From the sequence record LC727701.1: a stretch of 64,000 nucleotides of DNA. One strand, 5' to 3'. Under the pieces are notes generated by a model. The model saw nothing but the letters and a program-made list of their open reading frames with translations, was not told where the DNA came from and made no database searches. Both the position numbers and the translations under genes were made by a program. Of this stretch, positions 8,498-64,000 are shown in pieces. Each line of letters begins with the position of its first letter. Position 1 is the stretch's first letter.

Positions 8498-10171
8498 ATG
8501 TTAGGTTTTAATAATTCAGCAATGGGTGGTAATACTGAAGTACAGATTGAATCATTCATTCTAGTACAGACTGGTACTTATCAACCTGAGCATGTTCGAC
8601 CATTTACGGTAGAGGTCACTGAGAACTCTATTGAACGTTTAAAAGAAGCAACTAATGATGGTCGTAATCTAGGTGTTGCAGCTGTGCAGCAAATTGCAGC
8701 TGATGTGATTGCACCACGTGCTCAAACTCAAGGTGAAGTCCCTATCGTCAATGGTTGGGGTGAGCGCCGGTTTAGGTTCATGATGAAAGTATGGGAGAAT
8801 AACCGTTTCTTTGGTAATACCCGTACTTGCCGGATTCTATTTGGTTGCTCTGACCATTGCTCTATTAGTCCGCTTAGCAATAGTCTAGATCCTAACATGC
8901 GTATCTATTTTAATAGTGAAACTGTTATTGTAGAGCGCCAACGACCAACTGAGTTCGGTGTAGTCAAACAAGCACATATCCTAGGTTCTAACCAGATCCT
9001 TGCACCCGTCGATATCATGAGTGATATTACTATCCCTCAGAACGGGTTTAGCATGTATACTGGAACTTCATCATATCTCCAACGACCAGAAGATGTTTTC
9101 CAAATTCAGCAAACGATGCAAGTAGCTAAACGCATTGAATCAACTGGACTACATCAAGGCGTATTTGACCGGATCATTGACCAACGCTCCAGTGTTGGTG
9201 AAGCAGGCACTTTCCAATATTCAAATCGCCGTGATACTTCTCCTACTCGTTATCTATCTAGTACTCTTAATGCATGGCAGCATTCTGTTAAAGAAGCTGA
9301 GATGGCTAATAATGATAACGATAATATCTTTGGAGGTGTCTCTGATGAAGTGATGCTAGGCGATGCATCTGCTGTACTTCGAAATCAAGATATCCATTCC
9401 AATATGTTCATGCGCATTCTAAAAGAACGCTGCAATTACATGGAACGTGGCTTTGTTACACTGGCTGACCTACAACGAGTATTCCCTGAACTACTGGTTG
9501 ATGGTGTAGTTAAAGCTGGTATGGATAATGGTAATTCTCAACGCTTCGTTAACCGAGCAGAGCATTCCATGCATTGGGGTGGTGCAGATCATCACACTGT
9601 TGCAGCATCTCTACTTGCACAAGTAGTTCCAGCAATCATGATGGATAACTATTTCCGGGTAACCTCCTTTGCAATTACAAATGGACATGGAGCGAATAAC
9701 TATCTATTCGAAATGCATCCAAATGGTACCAGGAGTATCATGGATGGAATTGATATGACTCCACAGATTAATGACTTTGAACGTCGTCTTATTACCGATG
9801 CGATTAACAGTATCTCTTATGGTAACCAGATTCCGTTTAAAATTTCCATGCACTCTGACTTAGCTGGTGATACTGTTATTGATATCAGTCTAAATCATGA
9901 ATCGGTAGAACGATTCATCGCACCGACCTTCATTGATAGTCTGTTTAGTCCAGTCATTACTCGGGATGCATCTGCACCGGCTATGATCTCTAATGACCTT
10001 ACCTATCTTGTTAAGAATGTTATCCCAACTAAGACTCAACAAAACATTCTAAACAGTAGTGGTCAGCCGGTTAACATGCAACCGTATCAACATCCTGTAG
10101 CTCAACCTGCTCAAATCAATCCTAAATTTGGTGATAACAATGCCTACGATTTCTCTTTCCAAGTTCTATAG
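8498..10171 (+). CDS. picA: Phage-nucleus protein import factor PicA/Imp1 (gp69)
   Basis: 557 aa directly after gp68; this is the conserved position of gp69 in phiKZ-like phages. Confidence 0.8.
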   Translation: MLGFNNSAMGGNTEVQIESFILVQTGTYQPEHVRPFTVEVTENSIERLKEATNDGRNLGVAAVQQIAADVIAPRAQTQGEVPIVNGWGERRFRFMMKVWENNRFFGNTRTCRILFGCSDHCSISPLSNSLDPNMRIYFNSETVIVERQRPTEFGVVKQAHILGSNQILAPVDIMSDITIPQNGFSMYTGTSSYLQRPEDVFQIQQTMQVAKRIESTGLHQGVFDRIIDQRSSVGEAGTFQYSNRRDTSPTRYLSSTLNAWQHSVKEAEMANNDNDNIFGGVSDEVMLGDASAVLRNQDIHSNMFMRILKERCNYMERGFVTLADLQRVFPELLVDGVVKAGMDNGNSQRFVNRAEHSMHWGGADHHTVAASLLAQVVPAIMMDNYFRVTSFAITNGHGANNYLFEMHPNGTRSIMDGIDMTPQINDFERRLITDAINSISYGNQIPFKISMHSDLAGDTVIDISLNHESVERFIAPTFIDSLFSPVITRDASAPAMISNDLTYLVKNVIPTKTQQNILNSSGQPVNMQPYQHPVAQPAQINPKFGDNNAYDFSFQVL

Positions 10172-59577: not shown

Positions 59578-60075
59578 ATGAACCGCATGATTCCTGCAAA
59601 TGAGCGTGACAGTGAACTCAGTCTCTATGGCTATTTGACCTCTGTTGTAACTGGTGGGGTTGCTTGGGATTATAACCCTATCGTTCTGCTGGAGAAGATG
59701 TGTAATCGTGATGATGAGGCCATCTGCATGGGTGAACCCAATTACGATCAATTACGTTTGATCGGTGCAAGGGGTATGTTCGAACAGATCTCTGAAAACA
59801 TCCTGTCTCGCAATGAACAAATCATGGATGGTGTTCGTGATTTCTTCAAAGATGGTCTCCAGTTGAAAACCAATGTAGATGACATGTTGGTGAGACTGAA
59901 TTATCAAACTGTGCATAACGGGACTGATATGGGTGAGGTGATCATGGTAAACTTGTTCAAAAAAATTGATGGTGATTATGTGGTTGCTCATAAGTGCACA
60001 TATGACCCTCAAGATTGGAAACATGCGTTATATTACTTCACCAATGCCTCCATGATCAGTCAAAAACAAAAATAA
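59578..60075 (+). CDS. Hypothetical protein
   Basis: GAGG RBS before ATG 59578. Confidence 0.7.
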   Translation: MNRMIPANERDSELSLYGYLTSVVTGGVAWDYNPIVLLEKMCNRDDEAICMGEPNYDQLRLIGARGMFEQISENILSRNEQIMDGVRDFFKDGLQLKTNVDDMLVRLNYQTVHNGTDMGEVIMVNLFKKIDGDYVVAHKCTYDPQDWKHALYYFTNASMISQKQK

Positions 60076-60116
60076 ATATCATGCATATCCCTTCAGGTAA
60101 TTTTAGAGAGGTTATT

Positions 60117-60392
60117 ATGAGCAATAAAGATGTATCAATGATCCCAGTTTATGAAAATCACTTTGTCACTACTGGTGCTACTCCACGACATGAAGCAATT
60201 GTGGTATGTCGTGAATATGGTATTAATCCATTAGATGATGCACCATTTCGGGGTTCATGGGTGATGCGCTACCGAGAGACTGGAAAATTCATTGATTGTT
60301 CCAGGGATATTGATGATTTAGCTAAGAAATATAATCTGACCATTCATAAACCAACCATTGAATTATACACCAGCACGTATATTGGTCAATAG
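60117..60392 (+). CDS. Hypothetical protein, REYGINP paralog 2
   Basis: GAGG RBS before ATG 60117. Confidence 0.7.
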   Translation: MSNKDVSMIPVYENHFVTTGATPRHEAIVVCREYGINPLDDAPFRGSWVMRYRETGKFIDCSRDIDDLAKKYNLTIHKPTIELYTSTYIGQ

Positions 60393-60437
60393 AAAAAAAC
60401 CACCCTATATAAGGGTGGTTTATAAAAGAGGTGAAAT

Positions 60438-60701
60438 ATGCATAAACTTAATCCTGGTTGTTATCCATTAACTATAAATCCTAATGGTAAGTTTCTGAAT
60501 AAAGACGATTTACGGAATCTTCCCAATGGGATTTATGTAACTTCTCCGTTACATGGTCCTAGGGTATATAGCCATGATCGACGCGTTATGGTTGATGGTG
60601 ATTATTGTTATCTAATCACTGCACCGAACATAAAATTCAAGGTAAGTGATTTCTTTAAATATAATGTAGTTTATTATCCGAGCATTTACCTCAAGAGGTA
60701 A
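60438..60701 (+). CDS. Hypothetical protein, NLPxG/HGP paralog 1
   Basis: GAGGTG RBS. Confidence 0.7.
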   Translation: MHKLNPGCYPLTINPNGKFLNKDDLRNLPNGIYVTSPLHGPRVYSHDRRVMVDGDYCYLITAPNIKFKVSDFFKYNVVYYPSIYLKR

Positions 60702-60708
60702 TAAATAA

Positions 60709-60993
60709 ATGGCAAACGAATGCACTCCCGGTGTCTGGGATACACTAGTTGACTCGACAAAAGAAACTGAAAACCTACGTATCCGTTCCCAACTCATGCG
60801 GGCTCTCACCCGTACTATAAAGGGCTGGGATCTTCCGCAAAAAGACGCTGCTGCTCGCCTACATGTTACGCAACCGAGATTGAATGATCTTCTCAAAGGC
60901 AAGATTGACAAGTTCTCTCTAGACGCCCTGGTAAACCTACTGGACGCGGCTGATCTGACTCTTGAGATATCAGTGATCCCACGTGCAGTATAA
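60709..60993 (+). CDS. XRE-family helix-turn-helix protein, HigA-like antitoxin type
   Basis: QKDAAARLHVTQPRLNDLLKGKIDKFSLDALV is a typical XRE/HigA-type HTH signature. Confidence 0.82.
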   Translation: MANECTPGVWDTLVDSTKETENLRIRSQLMRALTRTIKGWDLPQKDAAARLHVTQPRLNDLLKGKIDKFSLDALVNLLDAADLTLEISVIPRAV

Positions 60994-61056
60994 ACCATGG
61001 GGACGCAGCTTGATACGGCCACCGGGTGGTTTCATGACAGCAAGGAAATAAAGAAA

Positions 61057-61284
61057 ATGACAACTGATAAAAAGTTTAGCATTAAAGAACTCGGATGGGA
61101 AAAAGCCACTAATCTACCCGATGGTGAATACTACACTATTCCTAAACATGGACCACAAAACTGGCGGTATGATCGCAAGATTATCAAAACCAAGAACAGT
61201 GTAAAACTGGTAAATGAACCAGATTATAGCTGGTCAGCCCCATTCTTTTTCGAGGCAAATAACTTGTTAATCGAAGAACCATGA
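61057..61284 (+). CDS. Hypothetical protein, NLPxG/HGP paralog 2
   Basis: AAGGA RBS before ATG 61057. Confidence 0.65.
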   Translation: MTTDKKFSIKELGWEKATNLPDGEYYTIPKHGPQNWRYDRKIIKTKNSVKLVNEPDYSWSAPFFFEANNLLIEEP

Positions 61285-61442
61285 CTATGAAACGATCACC
61301 AGGTTATTTTAAAAGAGTAGTAAAAGAACTAACTGAGCGAGAGAATATTATACATCAGAAAGTTCTTAAATACATCAATGATAATCCGAATATTTCTTAT
61401 AAAGAAGCACGTCAGATAGTAACTAAGGAGATTATAAAGTGA
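61281..61442 (+). CDS. 53-aa basic protein (not in ORF track)
   Basis: ATGA and GTGA overlaps couple it to both neighbours. Confidence 0.6.
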   Translation: MTMKRSPGYFKRVVKELTERENIIHQKVLKYINDNPNISYKEARQIVTKEIIK

Positions 61443-61651
61443 CTATTTCAATTCCTGCATCAGTTCGTGGTGAGTTTGGAATTTATTACAAAAATAATAA
61501 GAATCTTCGACTGGGTCAGGCATGGCATAATTACATGCGTCTTGAAAATATCCAAAATGAAATGGATAAAGAATGGGCTGATAAACTCTGGAATGCTTCT
61601 GATAAAGAAGCAGCTGATATGGTTGATGAAGCCACTAATTGGACTATGTAA
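61439..61651 (+). CDS. Hypothetical protein
   Basis: GTG start with AAGGAG RBS; LRLGQAWHN motif. Confidence 0.7.
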   Translation: MTISIPASVRGEFGIYYKNNKNLRLGQAWHNYMRLENIQNEMDKEWADKLWNASDKEAADMVDEATNWTM

Positions 61652-61690
61652 CTAAACAATATTTACTATAGTAAATAAGGAGAAATACAA

Positions 61691-61834
61691 ATGACTAATG
61701 AAGAAATTATCGTAGATGAAAGTAAATGGGCCGATGACAGCGAGATGGTTGGCTGTAAACCAGTTGATCTGTTTATTGATTTTTACTGGGTAGAGCCCAC
61801 TCATCATACTCAAGAAGGAAAAGAGGATAATTAA
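61691..61834 (+). CDS. 47-aa acidic protein (not in ORF track)
   Basis: TAAGGAG RBS. Confidence 0.6.
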   Translation: MTNEEIIVDESKWADDSEMVGCKPVDLFIDFYWVEPTHHTQEGKEDN

Positions 61835-61835
61835 C

Positions 61836-62111
61836 ATGGGTGAATATACACAGAATGGTATTCGTCATTTTCGTCCGGATGATACCGAAGATACCTTTTA
61901 TATCTTGGGTGATTGTTATGTAGCCAATACTATCGCCGATATTATCGAGATGGCAACTAAGAAATGGGGTGATGGTATTACTCTTGATATGATTAATATC
62001 AGTACTGAATATATTCATACAAGTTGTCTAGGGTATGATGAGTACGACCCCAGCGATTACAGTAATTATTTATGCATCTCTCGTGTTAGGGAAACATCGC
62101 TGGTTAAATAA
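61836..62111 (+). CDS. Hypothetical protein
   Basis: GAGG RBS; C-terminal HTSCLGYDEYDPSDY motif. Confidence 0.7.
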   Translation: MGEYTQNGIRHFRPDDTEDTFYILGDCYVANTIADIIEMATKKWGDGITLDMINISTEYIHTSCLGYDEYDPSDYSNYLCISRVRETSLVK

Positions 62112-62124
62112 ATTAACGACATAA

Positions 62125-62152
62125 GCCCTCTCCTTCGGGAGAGGGCATTTAT
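62125..62152 (+). terminator. Terminator hairpin
   Basis: GCCCTCTCC-TTCG-GGAGAGGGC. Confidence 0.75.
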
Positions 62153-62276
62153 TCAGTTAAACTTTTAAGAATAAAAGAATTAGCCCTACTGCTGTAACAG
62201 TAGGGCTATATGCCGTTGAGTAAAAAATACTCAACATTTTCGCCCAAGTGGGCTTGGATTAACAAGAGGAACAATC

Positions 62277-62582
62277 ATGTTAATTCCAGTTACCGCTAAC
62301 AATGTTAGCCCTGACCTGCACAGAATGCAGGAAGTAGGTTTCTTTTTCAAGAGACCCGATGAATCAACCCATAGCATGTCGGTTGCGAAAACGCAAGCCG
62401 ATAATGTTATCCAATGTCGAGATCGTAGAGGTAACTTCATTGGTTATTGGGCTGGCCCTACAATAGGATACGTCAACAACGCAGGTTTAGCCGTATCCAT
62501 CAACCCCTTCGACAATTTCATAGTAACATACACTGACATGGATCAGAAGAAGTTCTATGTAACCGAAAGGAGAAGCCTATGA
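62277..62582 (+). CDS. Hypothetical protein
   Basis: GAGGA RBS; 101 aa. Confidence 0.7.
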   Translation: MLIPVTANNVSPDLHRMQEVGFFFKRPDESTHSMSVAKTQADNVIQCRDRRGNFIGYWAGPTIGYVNNAGLAVSINPFDNFIVTYTDMDQKKFYVTERRSL

Positions 62583-62589
62583 TAAACAA

Positions 62590-62632
62590 CCCCTCTCCTA
62601 AAGGAGAGGGACTTATCTGAATTCTTTTTTTT
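62590..62632 (+). terminator. Rho-independent terminator ending the rightward early block
   Basis: CCCTCTCC-TAAA-GGAGAGGG then a T8 run. Confidence 0.7.
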
Positions 62633-62639
62633 GTTTAAG

Positions 62640-63190
62640 TGAGAGCCGCCCGCTAAAGCGGCTCCCAAGTGGAGTTAAGTCTCCCGCTAAAGAGAAACTC
62701 CAGAATACATGGGGTAGCGACTCCTCATGTAGATATCCTAATTAATCTCTTTAGCTAGTAATCAATACCAGTTATCACTCGTTGATAATTGATTTGTTTA
62801 TTAGCTAATTTGACTTAATCAGAATGATCAATACATATTGTTAATAATCTAGTATATTATTACCAGTATCATTGAGTAATACTGGTAATCAAATATTACT
62901 CATGAATCTTACCTAATGTGGAACTGAGGAATCGGATCGCCCCGTAGGGGCTTTTATTTCATAATAAACTATACCGAAGGTATATCCTTATTCTAATAAT
63001 AAACAATATTAGCATTATTCTAATAGCGTTAGCTAATACATACTGTCTCCCTAAAAGGAGACACAGTATAGATTATATTTTTTTTAATTAAAAATAATAA
63101 GTCTAGAGATAGACTTTCTTTATGCCTTTAATACCTTCTAATTTGCTCTATAATCGATTTTATTCGTTATTCACTAGCATATTAGCCATA
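62640..63190. other. Hairpin-dense non-coding region (structured RNA or DNA cis-element)
   Basis: About ten inverted repeats in ~550 bp and no credible ORF. Confidence 0.55.
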
Positions 63191-63301
63191 CGACATAAAA
63201 GCCCTCCTAAGAGGGCTAAAATGCTTTATTTTTCATTAGTTGGATATAGGAGTACAATAGACTCTGCGCATACTTTAATAACTTGGATATTTTCACTGTC
63301 A

Positions 63302-63463
63302 TTATTTTTTTGATTGTTTATTTTTAACGCAGTATTCAAATTGTTGGGATTTGAGTTTATATACGTTATTGTTCTCTTCTCCCAGTATTCCTCCAAATAC
63401 CAATCCTAGGATAAATATTAATAAACCACCAATAAAGATAATATAAACATTACCATAGTACAT
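63302..63463 (-). CDS. Small TM-anchored protein (53 aa; possibly frameshift-truncated)
   Basis: MYYGNVYIIFIGGLLIFILGLVFGGILG...; TAATG-coupled to the upstream gene, AAGGAG RBS. Confidence 0.55.
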   Translation of the reverse strand: MYYGNVYIIFIGGLLIFILGLVFGGILGEENNNVYKLKSQQFEYCVKNKQSKK

Positions 63464-63464
63464 A

Positions 63465-63833
63465 TTACATTAACTCCTTTACATCATCTGGAATAGATTC
63501 ACACCGATCTAAATCCCAGTAGATGTGTGTATAGTGATCTTGGTTTACGATACTGATAAAATCCCCATTAGGATCGGGTAATGGTTTACGGATAATATCA
63601 ACGTAAATAGTGTAATATAAATAAAGATCACTGATGAGTTCATCAATGTTTAAATTATTACCCTCTGCATATTTCCCATATTTAAAATAATGGGCTTCTT
63701 CTGCTACAGCATAACGGATTTTATCGTAATTTTGTGATGCGGCATATACACGTGCAAATAGAGGGCGATTAAACTTTCTACATTCACTAATATTTTTTCT
63801 TAAAGTATTTACTAAATTATCAATTGCACTCAT
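63465..63833 (-). CDS. Hypothetical protein
   Basis: 122 aa with AATAGG leader on the minus strand. Confidence 0.7.
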   Translation of the reverse strand: MSAIDNLVNTLRKNISECRKFNRPLFARVYAASQNYDKIRYAVAEEAHYFKYGKYAEGNNLNIDELISDLYLYYTIYVDIIRKPLPDPNGDFISIVNQDHYTHIYWDLDRCESIPDDVKELM

Positions 63834-63858
63834 TTAGATTACCTATTAAAATTATAGT

Positions 63859-63884
63859 GCTCTCCCCGAAGGGAGAGCTTTATG
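63859..63884. terminator. Terminator-like hairpin
   Basis: GCTCTCCC-CGAA-GGGAGAGC-TTTATG. Confidence 0.65.
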
Positions 63885-64000
63885 TTGTTAATATCCCCAG
63901 TCATCTCCACCAGTGGCTTGCATATTGCTAAGACTTGGTACAAAGTCCATGTAATTGTTTTCTTCTTTATCGATATCCCATCTAATACCACCAATACGGT

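Follow-up and report, generated by a model that had tools for sequence, protein, structure and literature searches.

What do consecutive hairpins encode when they lie, clear of any credible gene, between two converging blocks of phage genes? In the window analysed here (a 64,000-nt stretch of sequence record LC727701.1, to whose first letter all positions refer), such a cluster occupies positions 62640-62760, and an initial annotation had offered several readings of it: a structured non-coding RNA with repeated protein-binding loops, a pseudoknot or switch, or a single-stranded DNA signal such as a primase or origin hairpin. The window belongs to a phiKZ-type jumbo phage. Identity over the 1-kb stretch around the hairpins is 100% with Pseudomonas phage NK1 and 99.6% with phiKZ, and matches are present in 55 Pseudomonas phage records, 47 of which span at least 80% of the query. 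The hairpins sit in a gap of ~540 bp that separates a plus-strand block (gp110-gp116 together with a 101-codon ORF at 62277-62582) from a minus-strand block (the DnaB-like helicase gene gp118, 117.4 and 117.3). No tRNA or tmRNA genes were found in the 64-kb window. The initial annotation held that no ORF covers the hairpins, which stands insofar as no credible ORF does so; two frames that we do not regard as credible nevertheless overlap them, namely a 37-codon TTG frame (62555-62668, minus) over hairpin 1 and a 29-codon plus-strand frame (62668-62757) that is annotated in two relatives. Throughout, phiKZ coordinates equal window positions plus 52089 up to 62624 and plus 52088 to the right of 62625 (a T of the run at that point is missing from phiKZ, hence the shift), and genome-wide counts were taken from the nearest record, the 267-kb genome of a relative (G001).

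Identity, ends and strand of the transcript

The region 62640-62760 lies wholly within a published phiKZ transcript, known as TU089 or '5'UTR_p40', and the RNA itself, its ends and its reading as a product of premature termination are already in the literature. Grad-seq yielded two phiKZ ncRNA candidates, one of them '5'UTR_p40', and a Northern blot confirmed the latter as a species of ~180 nt, which was called highly structured, was found not free but in RNA-polymerase-sized and 30S fractions, and has a second stem-loop that 'might promote premature termination' (Gerovac et al. 2021, mBio, PMC8545117). The RNA was remapped by ONT-cappable-seq (Putzeys et al. 2024, microLife, PMC10914365). In the accompanying tables (bioRxiv 10.1101/2023.10.13.562163), TU089 is a minus-strand unit of 197 nt without genes, with its start site at phiKZ 114922 and its termination site at 114725 (T053), and Table S7 equates this 197-nt species with the RNA of Gerovac and colleagues. 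Converted to the window, the two ends fall at 62834 and 62637, with 62640-62760 between them; the non-coding leader (197/198 nt; Tables S5 and S7) occupies the minus strand between these two positions, which puts the hairpins in the 3' two-thirds of the RNA. Over its length the window and phiKZ differ at 2 of 198 aligned positions, and the phiKZ haplotype folded here gives -65.1 kcal/mol, which is the RNAfold value published in Table S7.

Upstream of the start site lies the phiKZ middle promoter P060 (62835-62882, minus), with TACT at 62851-62854 and transcription starting from G 62834 of CAATATG. The long-read map lists P060 as a 'middle promoter' with its TSS at phiKZ 114922 (-) (Table S3, bioRxiv 10.1101/2023.10.13.562163); it was found by Wicke 2021 as well, who placed TACT ~22 nt upstream of middle-promoter start sites, and its published upstream sequence is that of the window. 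The p40 of the RNA's name is locus tag PHIKZ_p40, or PHIKZ117.2 (minus, window 62444-62539). The strand can be read from the Northern probe JVO-18831 (62769-62797, plus; Table S2 of PMC8545117), which matches the plus strand of the window apart from one SNP at 62770, a known polymorphic site: because the probe has plus-strand sequence, the RNA that it detected is of the minus strand. The proposal of a structured non-coding RNA, for which the initial annotation had suggested a Northern blot or RNA-seq as a check for a discrete transcript and its strand, is thus borne out by a published minus-strand species of 197 nt whose 5' and 3' ends are mapped and which gives a Northern signal (PMC8545117).

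Traces of the RNA are also apparent in public data. RNA libraries of three studies contain contigs over 62118-63221, with a depth 8 to 90 times that of flanking gene contigs in the two runs whose flanks could be measured: in run X1 the depth is 6396 (62118-62565) and 3345 (62536-63221) against 72 and 801 in the flanks, and in run X5 it is 658 (62118-63084) against 27 and 30. A further run (X12) gave a low-depth contig over 62140-62818, and the sole raw-read run, a RIP-seq experiment (X24), was without phage reads. The stretch is an abundant transcript. The contigs of X1 and X5 both stop at 62118, the published end T051, and in one of them an Illumina adapter is attached there, which is compatible with a minus-strand 3' end; as contigs carry no strand information, the assignment of strand rests on the published papers. 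A permissive-threshold search of Rfam over 60000-64000 gave best overlapping matches of only 17-20 bits, against thresholds of 37-70, with E values of 6.7-8.7. A 2026 review speaks only of 'potential roles' for the RNA and does not state a function.

Fold of the leader and the apex common to two of its stems

Viewed as DNA, hairpin 1 has a 7-bp stem (62643-62649 with 62658-62664) around the loop CCGCTAAA at 62650-62657. Hairpin 2 consists of GGAGTT (62671-62676), AAG, TCTC, a second CCGCTAAA loop (62684-62691), GAGA and AACTCC (62696-62701); hairpin 3 pairs TACATG (62706-62711) with CATGTA (62726-62731); and a 10-nt perfect inverted repeat links 62686-62695 to 62746-62755. All of the stems, both loops and the inverted repeat are where the initial annotation had put them. 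Folded at full length, the window RNA reaches -68.5 kcal/mol and its minimum free energy structure has four stems, SL1-SL4. SL1 (62732-62829) is a long 5' domain of 39 pairs that takes up 62746-62758; SL2 (62706-62731), the third stem, carries GAGGAG in its apical region, has pair probabilities of 0.88-1.0 and is invariant in 12 genomes; SL3 (62670-62702) corresponds to hairpin 2 and SL4 (62640-62667) to hairpin 1. The three stems first described are SL2, SL3 and SL4 of the 197-nt non-coding leader made from P060 on the minus strand.

The 186-nt stretch folds better than its shuffles on both strands (z = -5.4 plus, -5.3 minus), and SL2 alone favours the plus strand (-12.1 versus -8.0 on the minus). 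Support for the minus strand comes from the twin hairpins, each of which gains two U.G pairs there: on that strand each CCGCTAAA loop reads UUUAGCGG, and the two U.G pairs close it to a UAGC tetraloop. SL4 thereby has a 12-bp stem with three G.U pairs, the apex UU-UAGC-GG and a loop at 62652-62655, at -19.5 kcal/mol on the minus strand versus -14.6 on the plus strand; SL3 combines an outer stem of 6-7 bp, a 3-nt bulge and an inner stem of 6 bp beneath the same apex UU-UAGC-GG, with its loop at 62686-62689. In the full-length RNA the pair probabilities of the twin hairpins range from 0.53 to 0.99, most of them at least 0.9. The complete fold includes nine G.U pairs, which become A.C mismatches if it is read from the other strand.

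The segment common to the two hairpins is longer than first noted, being a 10-nt exact repeat (CCCGCTAAAG) nested in a 15-nt repeat with 87% identity and a spacing of 34 nt. Close direct repeats built on a 10-nt exact seed number only nine in the 64-kb window, this one included; of the others, five belong to the GAA/GAT-rich repeats at 47.5-48.2 kb, and those left are isolated pairs, at 33.5 kb and at 49.5-49.7 kb. The octamer CCGCTAAA occurs three times in the window against 1.1 expected, and nine times in the 267-kb relative genome; because it is so infrequent, two copies 34 nt apart are not a matter of chance. Two of the six inner-stem pairs are not the same in SL3 and SL4, each owing to compensatory changes at both bases (U-A to C-G in one, U-A to G-C in the other); the apex C-UU-UAGC-GG-G and one further pair are identical. 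On this comparison of sequences, SL3 and SL4 would fit two copies maintained as hairpins with a specified apex. Among the seven other sites of the octamer in the relative genome, one forms the same hairpin apex, and that one is the published terminator T003. Of the three hairpins that have this apex, SL4 and T003 are thus mapped RNA 3' ends, and SL3 lies directly upstream of the former. A scan of IMG/VR for two TTTAGCGGG copies 15-40 nt apart returned 80 matches in unrelated contigs, a number close to the chance expectation for 18 fixed bases and therefore uninformative.

The initial annotation had also seen in the 10-nt complementarity a possible pseudoknot or switch. When 62585-62770 is folded alone, the pairing of 62686-62695 with 62746-62755 does win on both strands; in the full RNA its probability is ~0 and forcing it costs 5.7 kcal/mol, because the arm 62746-62755 is paired inside SL1, which is transcribed ahead of SL3. 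The pairing is therefore not favoured in the real transcript, and we infer from the predicted ensemble that the complementarity would amount to at most a minor alternative conformer. Neither pairing state disrupts SL4, so that the RNA has no built-in anti-terminator. The RNA contains five GGA triplets, of which four are buried in stems of the minimum free energy structure and one (62724, in the SL2 apex) is partly exposed; we rejected an RsmA/CsrA sponge of the RsmY/RsmZ type on this ground.

The mapped 3' end and conservation among relatives

T053, the 3' end of the RNA, is window position 62637, three bases past the SL4 stem, and SL4 is the hairpin of this experimentally mapped end. Transcripts that pass T053 continue to T051 (62118-62146, minus), a terminator consisting of a hairpin at 62125-62146 followed by TTATGTCGT and listed as intrinsic with its TTS at 114207 (Table S4); its end at 62118 is seven bases beyond its hairpin, and the resulting transcript is the 715-nt TU088 (bioRxiv 10.1101/2023.10.13.562163; journal version PMC10914365). 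T053 itself (114725, minus) is entered in the same supplement without an intrinsic-terminator call (bioRxiv 10.1101/2023.10.13.562163). As long-read 3' ends cannot separate termination from processing, T053 could stem from processing.

The published phiKZ terminator motif, with 61 members, is BCCYCCCC-HWWD-GGGRRGGB-YTTATKYYGT (Putzeys 2024, PMC10914365). Like terminators of this kind, SL4 is a hairpin rich in GC, has a loop of 4 nt and stands at a mapped 3' end, and its apex recurs in the mapped terminator T003. It differs from them in having neither the YTTAT tail nor a U-tract (its tail is ACUUAAAC followed by an A-run), in its UAGC loop, which falls outside HWWD, and in that the published ARNold run did not call T053 intrinsic. 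Moreover, the listed minus-strand 3' ends do not include that of a better-fitting, terminator-like hairpin (62588-62613) located 24 nt beyond T053 in the direction of minus-strand transcription. This hairpin fits the motif on both strands, with phiKZ-type tails on the plus (CTTATCTG) and on the minus (GTTTATCAT), and the published tables contain no minus-strand TTS between phiKZ 114207 and 114725 (bioRxiv 10.1101/2023.10.13.562163).

We note in passing an (AAN)5 tract, AAC AAA AAA AAG AAU (62621-62635, minus), just past the 3' end of the 197-nt RNA and hence belonging only to read-through transcripts; on the plus strand the same positions are the T-run after the plus-strand terminator hairpin. 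A-rich motifs of the (AAN) type are of the kind bound by the distal face of Hfq.

Conservation was followed across twelve genomes, whose RNAs fall into six haplotypes; the relatives are at least 96% identical, and counting covariation among the six haplotypes found no pair changed on both sides, which leaves that count without power. The density of variable sites is more informative: the RNA has 7 in its 198 nt (3.5%), about half the 7.5% of the 1 kb around it (P = 0.016). Invariance across all 12 genomes extends over the blocks 62626-62695 and 62705-62769, which include the twin loops and SL4. Two substitutions bear on the fold. At 62804, C to U opposite G 62755 in SL1 turns a C-G pair into U.G in five of the six haplotypes; it is the only paired-site substitution that keeps pairing, and it does so only in a minus-strand RNA. 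At 62696, U to G in 5 of the 12 genomes costs SL3 an outer A-U pair, but bulge base 62679 then joins an inner G-C pair, and SL3 persists, re-registered rather than broken; on the minus strand this change would also give the long-range 10-bp helix an additional G.U pair.

In three neighbouring hairpins the loops behave differently from the invariant twin loops, varying mostly by inversion. Among the 12 phiKZ-like genomes these loops differ by exact inversion while their stems are fixed: CTGTAA or TTACAG at 62192-62197; TAAA or TTTA, and also TTCA or TGAA, at 62599-62602 (within the hairpin 62588-62613); and CATTGAGTA or TACTCAATG at 62870-62878. Such 'flip-flop' inversion of hairpin loops is known from chloroplast genomes. 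The last of the three is the 9-nt loop of a 20-nt inverted repeat (62850-62898, 85% complementary) that lies over the upstream part of P060 and might be an operator or a plus-strand structure.

Beyond these genomes, a distant BLASTN search with 62560-62960 returned nothing outside Phikzvirus except short chance matches, and a covariance model of SL2-SL4 (R1) run on the whole genomes of BRkr, Psa21 and phiPA3 gave no candidates. With filters off, the best match at the syntenic loci scored 17.6 bits (E = 0.019) in a phiPA3 intergenic gap; we rejected it as a homologue, as it consists of one palindromic GC hairpin and scores on the other strand too. That syntenic gap of 800 bp (between phiPA3 genes 129 and 128), downstream of the helicase block, holds (9738-9885 of phiPA3 locus L101) the palindromic hairpin GGGAGAAGCGG ... 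CCGCTTCTCCC, which is probably a bidirectional terminator rather than a homologue.

Competing readings, known systems and neighbouring genes

The reading that we favour, with a probability of about 0.6, is that two terminator-type hairpins in tandem form the end of a leader RNA produced by premature termination, which they probably also stabilise. SL3 and SL4 would then constitute a duplicated terminator-type hairpin module, with C-UU-UAGC-GG-G as its common apex, that brings the non-virion RNA polymerase of the phage to a stop or a pause without the help of a U-tract, or else marks the limit of trimming. The module would also shield the 3' end, allowing a stable, highly structured short RNA to accumulate, and only part of the transcription would get to the region downstream, through limited read-through.

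The main rival to this reading would make the leader a trans-acting, protein-binding RNA, in which the twin apexes are paired sites (of a decoy, sponge or assembly platform) and the role of SL4 at the 3' end is secondary. We consider it possible but rather doubtful. It would account for apexes that are identical and invariant next to terminator hairpins whose loops drift or flip, for stems that differ compensatorily below those apexes (as expected if shape and apex sequence are read), for the RNA-polymerase-sized and 30S fractions in which Grad-seq found the RNA (PMC8545117), and for the low density of variable sites. However, no partner protein is known, the same apex tops the ordinary mapped terminator T003, two sites are few for a sponge, a single GGA of five (62724) is free of a long stem, unlike in a CsrA sponge of the RsmY/RsmZ type, and no relative outside the genus carries the RNA (BLASTN; BRkr, Psa21, phiPA3). 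A related and more tentative proposal, which we would not expect to hold, is that inside the phage nucleus either the non-virion RNA polymerase or an RNA-binding protein of the phage reads the apex C-UU-UAGC-GG-G as a specific recognition module, SL3-SL4 being a factor-dependent terminator or pause site that dispenses with a U-tract. If true, the site would set how much transcription, antisense or downstream, gets across the disputed gp117 region, and this non-canonical phage polymerase would have its first described control element encoded in RNA.

Other explanations carry little probability. The hairpins could be functionless by-products that insulate convergent transcription units, with the twin apex a recent local duplication; this is improbable, although the locus does sit between convergent, terminator-rich gene blocks, is confined to one genus of near-identical genomes, and has no phenotype reported in the literature, the 2026 review included. 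Against it stand a dedicated promoter (P060), a variable-site density half that of surroundings that include coding sequence, an apex that is invariant while neighbouring loops change, and an RNA that is abundant and sediments in complexes. It is likewise quite improbable that the leader acts as a conformational switch, 62746-62755 pairing either in SL1 or with 62686-62695 (which opens SL3) and so altering SL4 formation or binding: the 10-bp complement is perfect, prevails on both strands when 62585-62770 is folded alone, leaves 62746-62755 with two mutually exclusive partners and would gain a G.U pair on the minus strand from the 62696 change, but in the mapped full-length RNA it has the near-zero probability and the 5.7 kcal/mol cost given above, SL1, made first, would capture the segment, SL4 is intact in both states and hence no anti-terminator arises, and by our estimate ~0.1 such 10-mers are expected by chance in a 570-bp stretch. 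A DNA-level role, with single-stranded hairpins serving as an origin or primase-loading site beside the DnaB-like helicase gene, is the least credible of all. The hairpins do lie in the largest non-coding island near that gene and fold well on both strands; yet the fold needs nine G.U pairs of a minus-strand RNA, which are poor in DNA and are A.C mismatches on the opposite strand, and the abundantly transcribed stretch is bounded exactly by a mapped promoter and an RNA 3' end. Accompanying repeated protein-binding boxes are absent, and the phiKZ literature examined reports no origin here. An ssDNA origin signal is accordingly unlikely, and the origin or primase idea of the initial annotation is left without support.

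Compared with the published phiKZ '5'UTR_p40' or TU089 (PMC8545117, PMC10914365), our locus has the same position, strand, ends and sequence, and is nothing different in kind; the 2021 paper drew two stems for ~180 nt, whereas the fold obtained here has four. What we add is the four-stem fold with its conservation profile and the cost of the alternative 10-bp pairing, together with the twin UAGC apex and its closing U.G pairs, the compensatory differences between the copies and the correct strand. One of the twin hairpins is thereby identified with a mapped, tail-less 3' end, and the proposed 10-bp 'switch' is disfavoured in the real transcript. This anatomy supplies precise mutants with which to study how the phiKZ non-virion polymerase terminates without a U-tract in the phage nucleus, and lets one ask whether the leader gates transcription antisense to a plus-strand ORF of modern annotations.

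In its general logic, with one start giving both a short abundant RNA that stops at a hairpin and a longer read-through transcript, the locus matches premature-termination 5' leaders such as attenuators and those of the riboswitch type, of which phiKZ offers further examples (T102 upstream of PHIKZ221 and T131 upstream of PHIKZ302). Unlike attenuator and riboswitch-type leaders, it yielded neither an alternative fold lacking SL4 nor a match in Rfam. In phiKZ the phage nucleus is the site of middle transcription, apart from ribosomes (reviewed in PMC13282480), which makes coupling to a leader peptide implausible and ribosome-coupled attenuation unlikely. Like lambda nut boxB and HK022 put, the leader carries hairpins in pairs on the nascent RNA, at terminators or ahead of them, and the stems vary beneath an apex that is conserved. 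The analogy is functional only: there is no similarity of sequence or loop type, the phiKZ polymerase is non-canonical, and the phiKZ hairpins coincide with termination rather than with anti-termination.

Several features of the RNA and its neighbourhood are worth recording in their own right. Within the leader, a 7-codon frame (MYSGVSL, 62687-62710, minus) begins 10 nt after the GAGGAG of the SL2 apex (62719-62727), and terminates at the UAG in the SL3 tetraloop; being exposed and similar to a Shine-Dalgarno sequence, GAGGAG might explain the partial sedimentation of the RNA with 30S. Downstream, the annotations of 62231-62582 conflict. Newer records give the 101-codon plus-strand ORF (62277-62582), which has a good AAGAGGA ribosome-binding site and matches phrog_25431. 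The phiKZ reference has instead the minus-strand p40 and p39, a single frame split by a conserved TAA and without visible ribosome-binding sites, and the published long-read map shows only minus-strand units there, TU087 and TU088 (bioRxiv 10.1101/2023.10.13.562163). Codon-position and dN/dS comparisons of the plus ORF with p39/p40 leave the matter undecided, as wobble positions are common to the two frames. Should the plus ORF be genuine, it would be covered in antisense over its full length by the 715-nt read-through RNA.

On the other side of the leader, the homologue of PHIKZ117.3 (63226-63463, minus) is frameshifted by an extra T in a T-run at 63305, which is absent from all 11 relatives compared; its product is cut to 53 residues where that of phiKZ has 78, and the change is either a sequencing error or a real truncation. 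The genomes of ANB1, T2P and SL2 carry a strongly diverged, partly deleted 117.3 region at 63231-63460, where the other genomes are near-identical, which places the start of a mosaic replacement just to the right of the terminator at 63200-63217.
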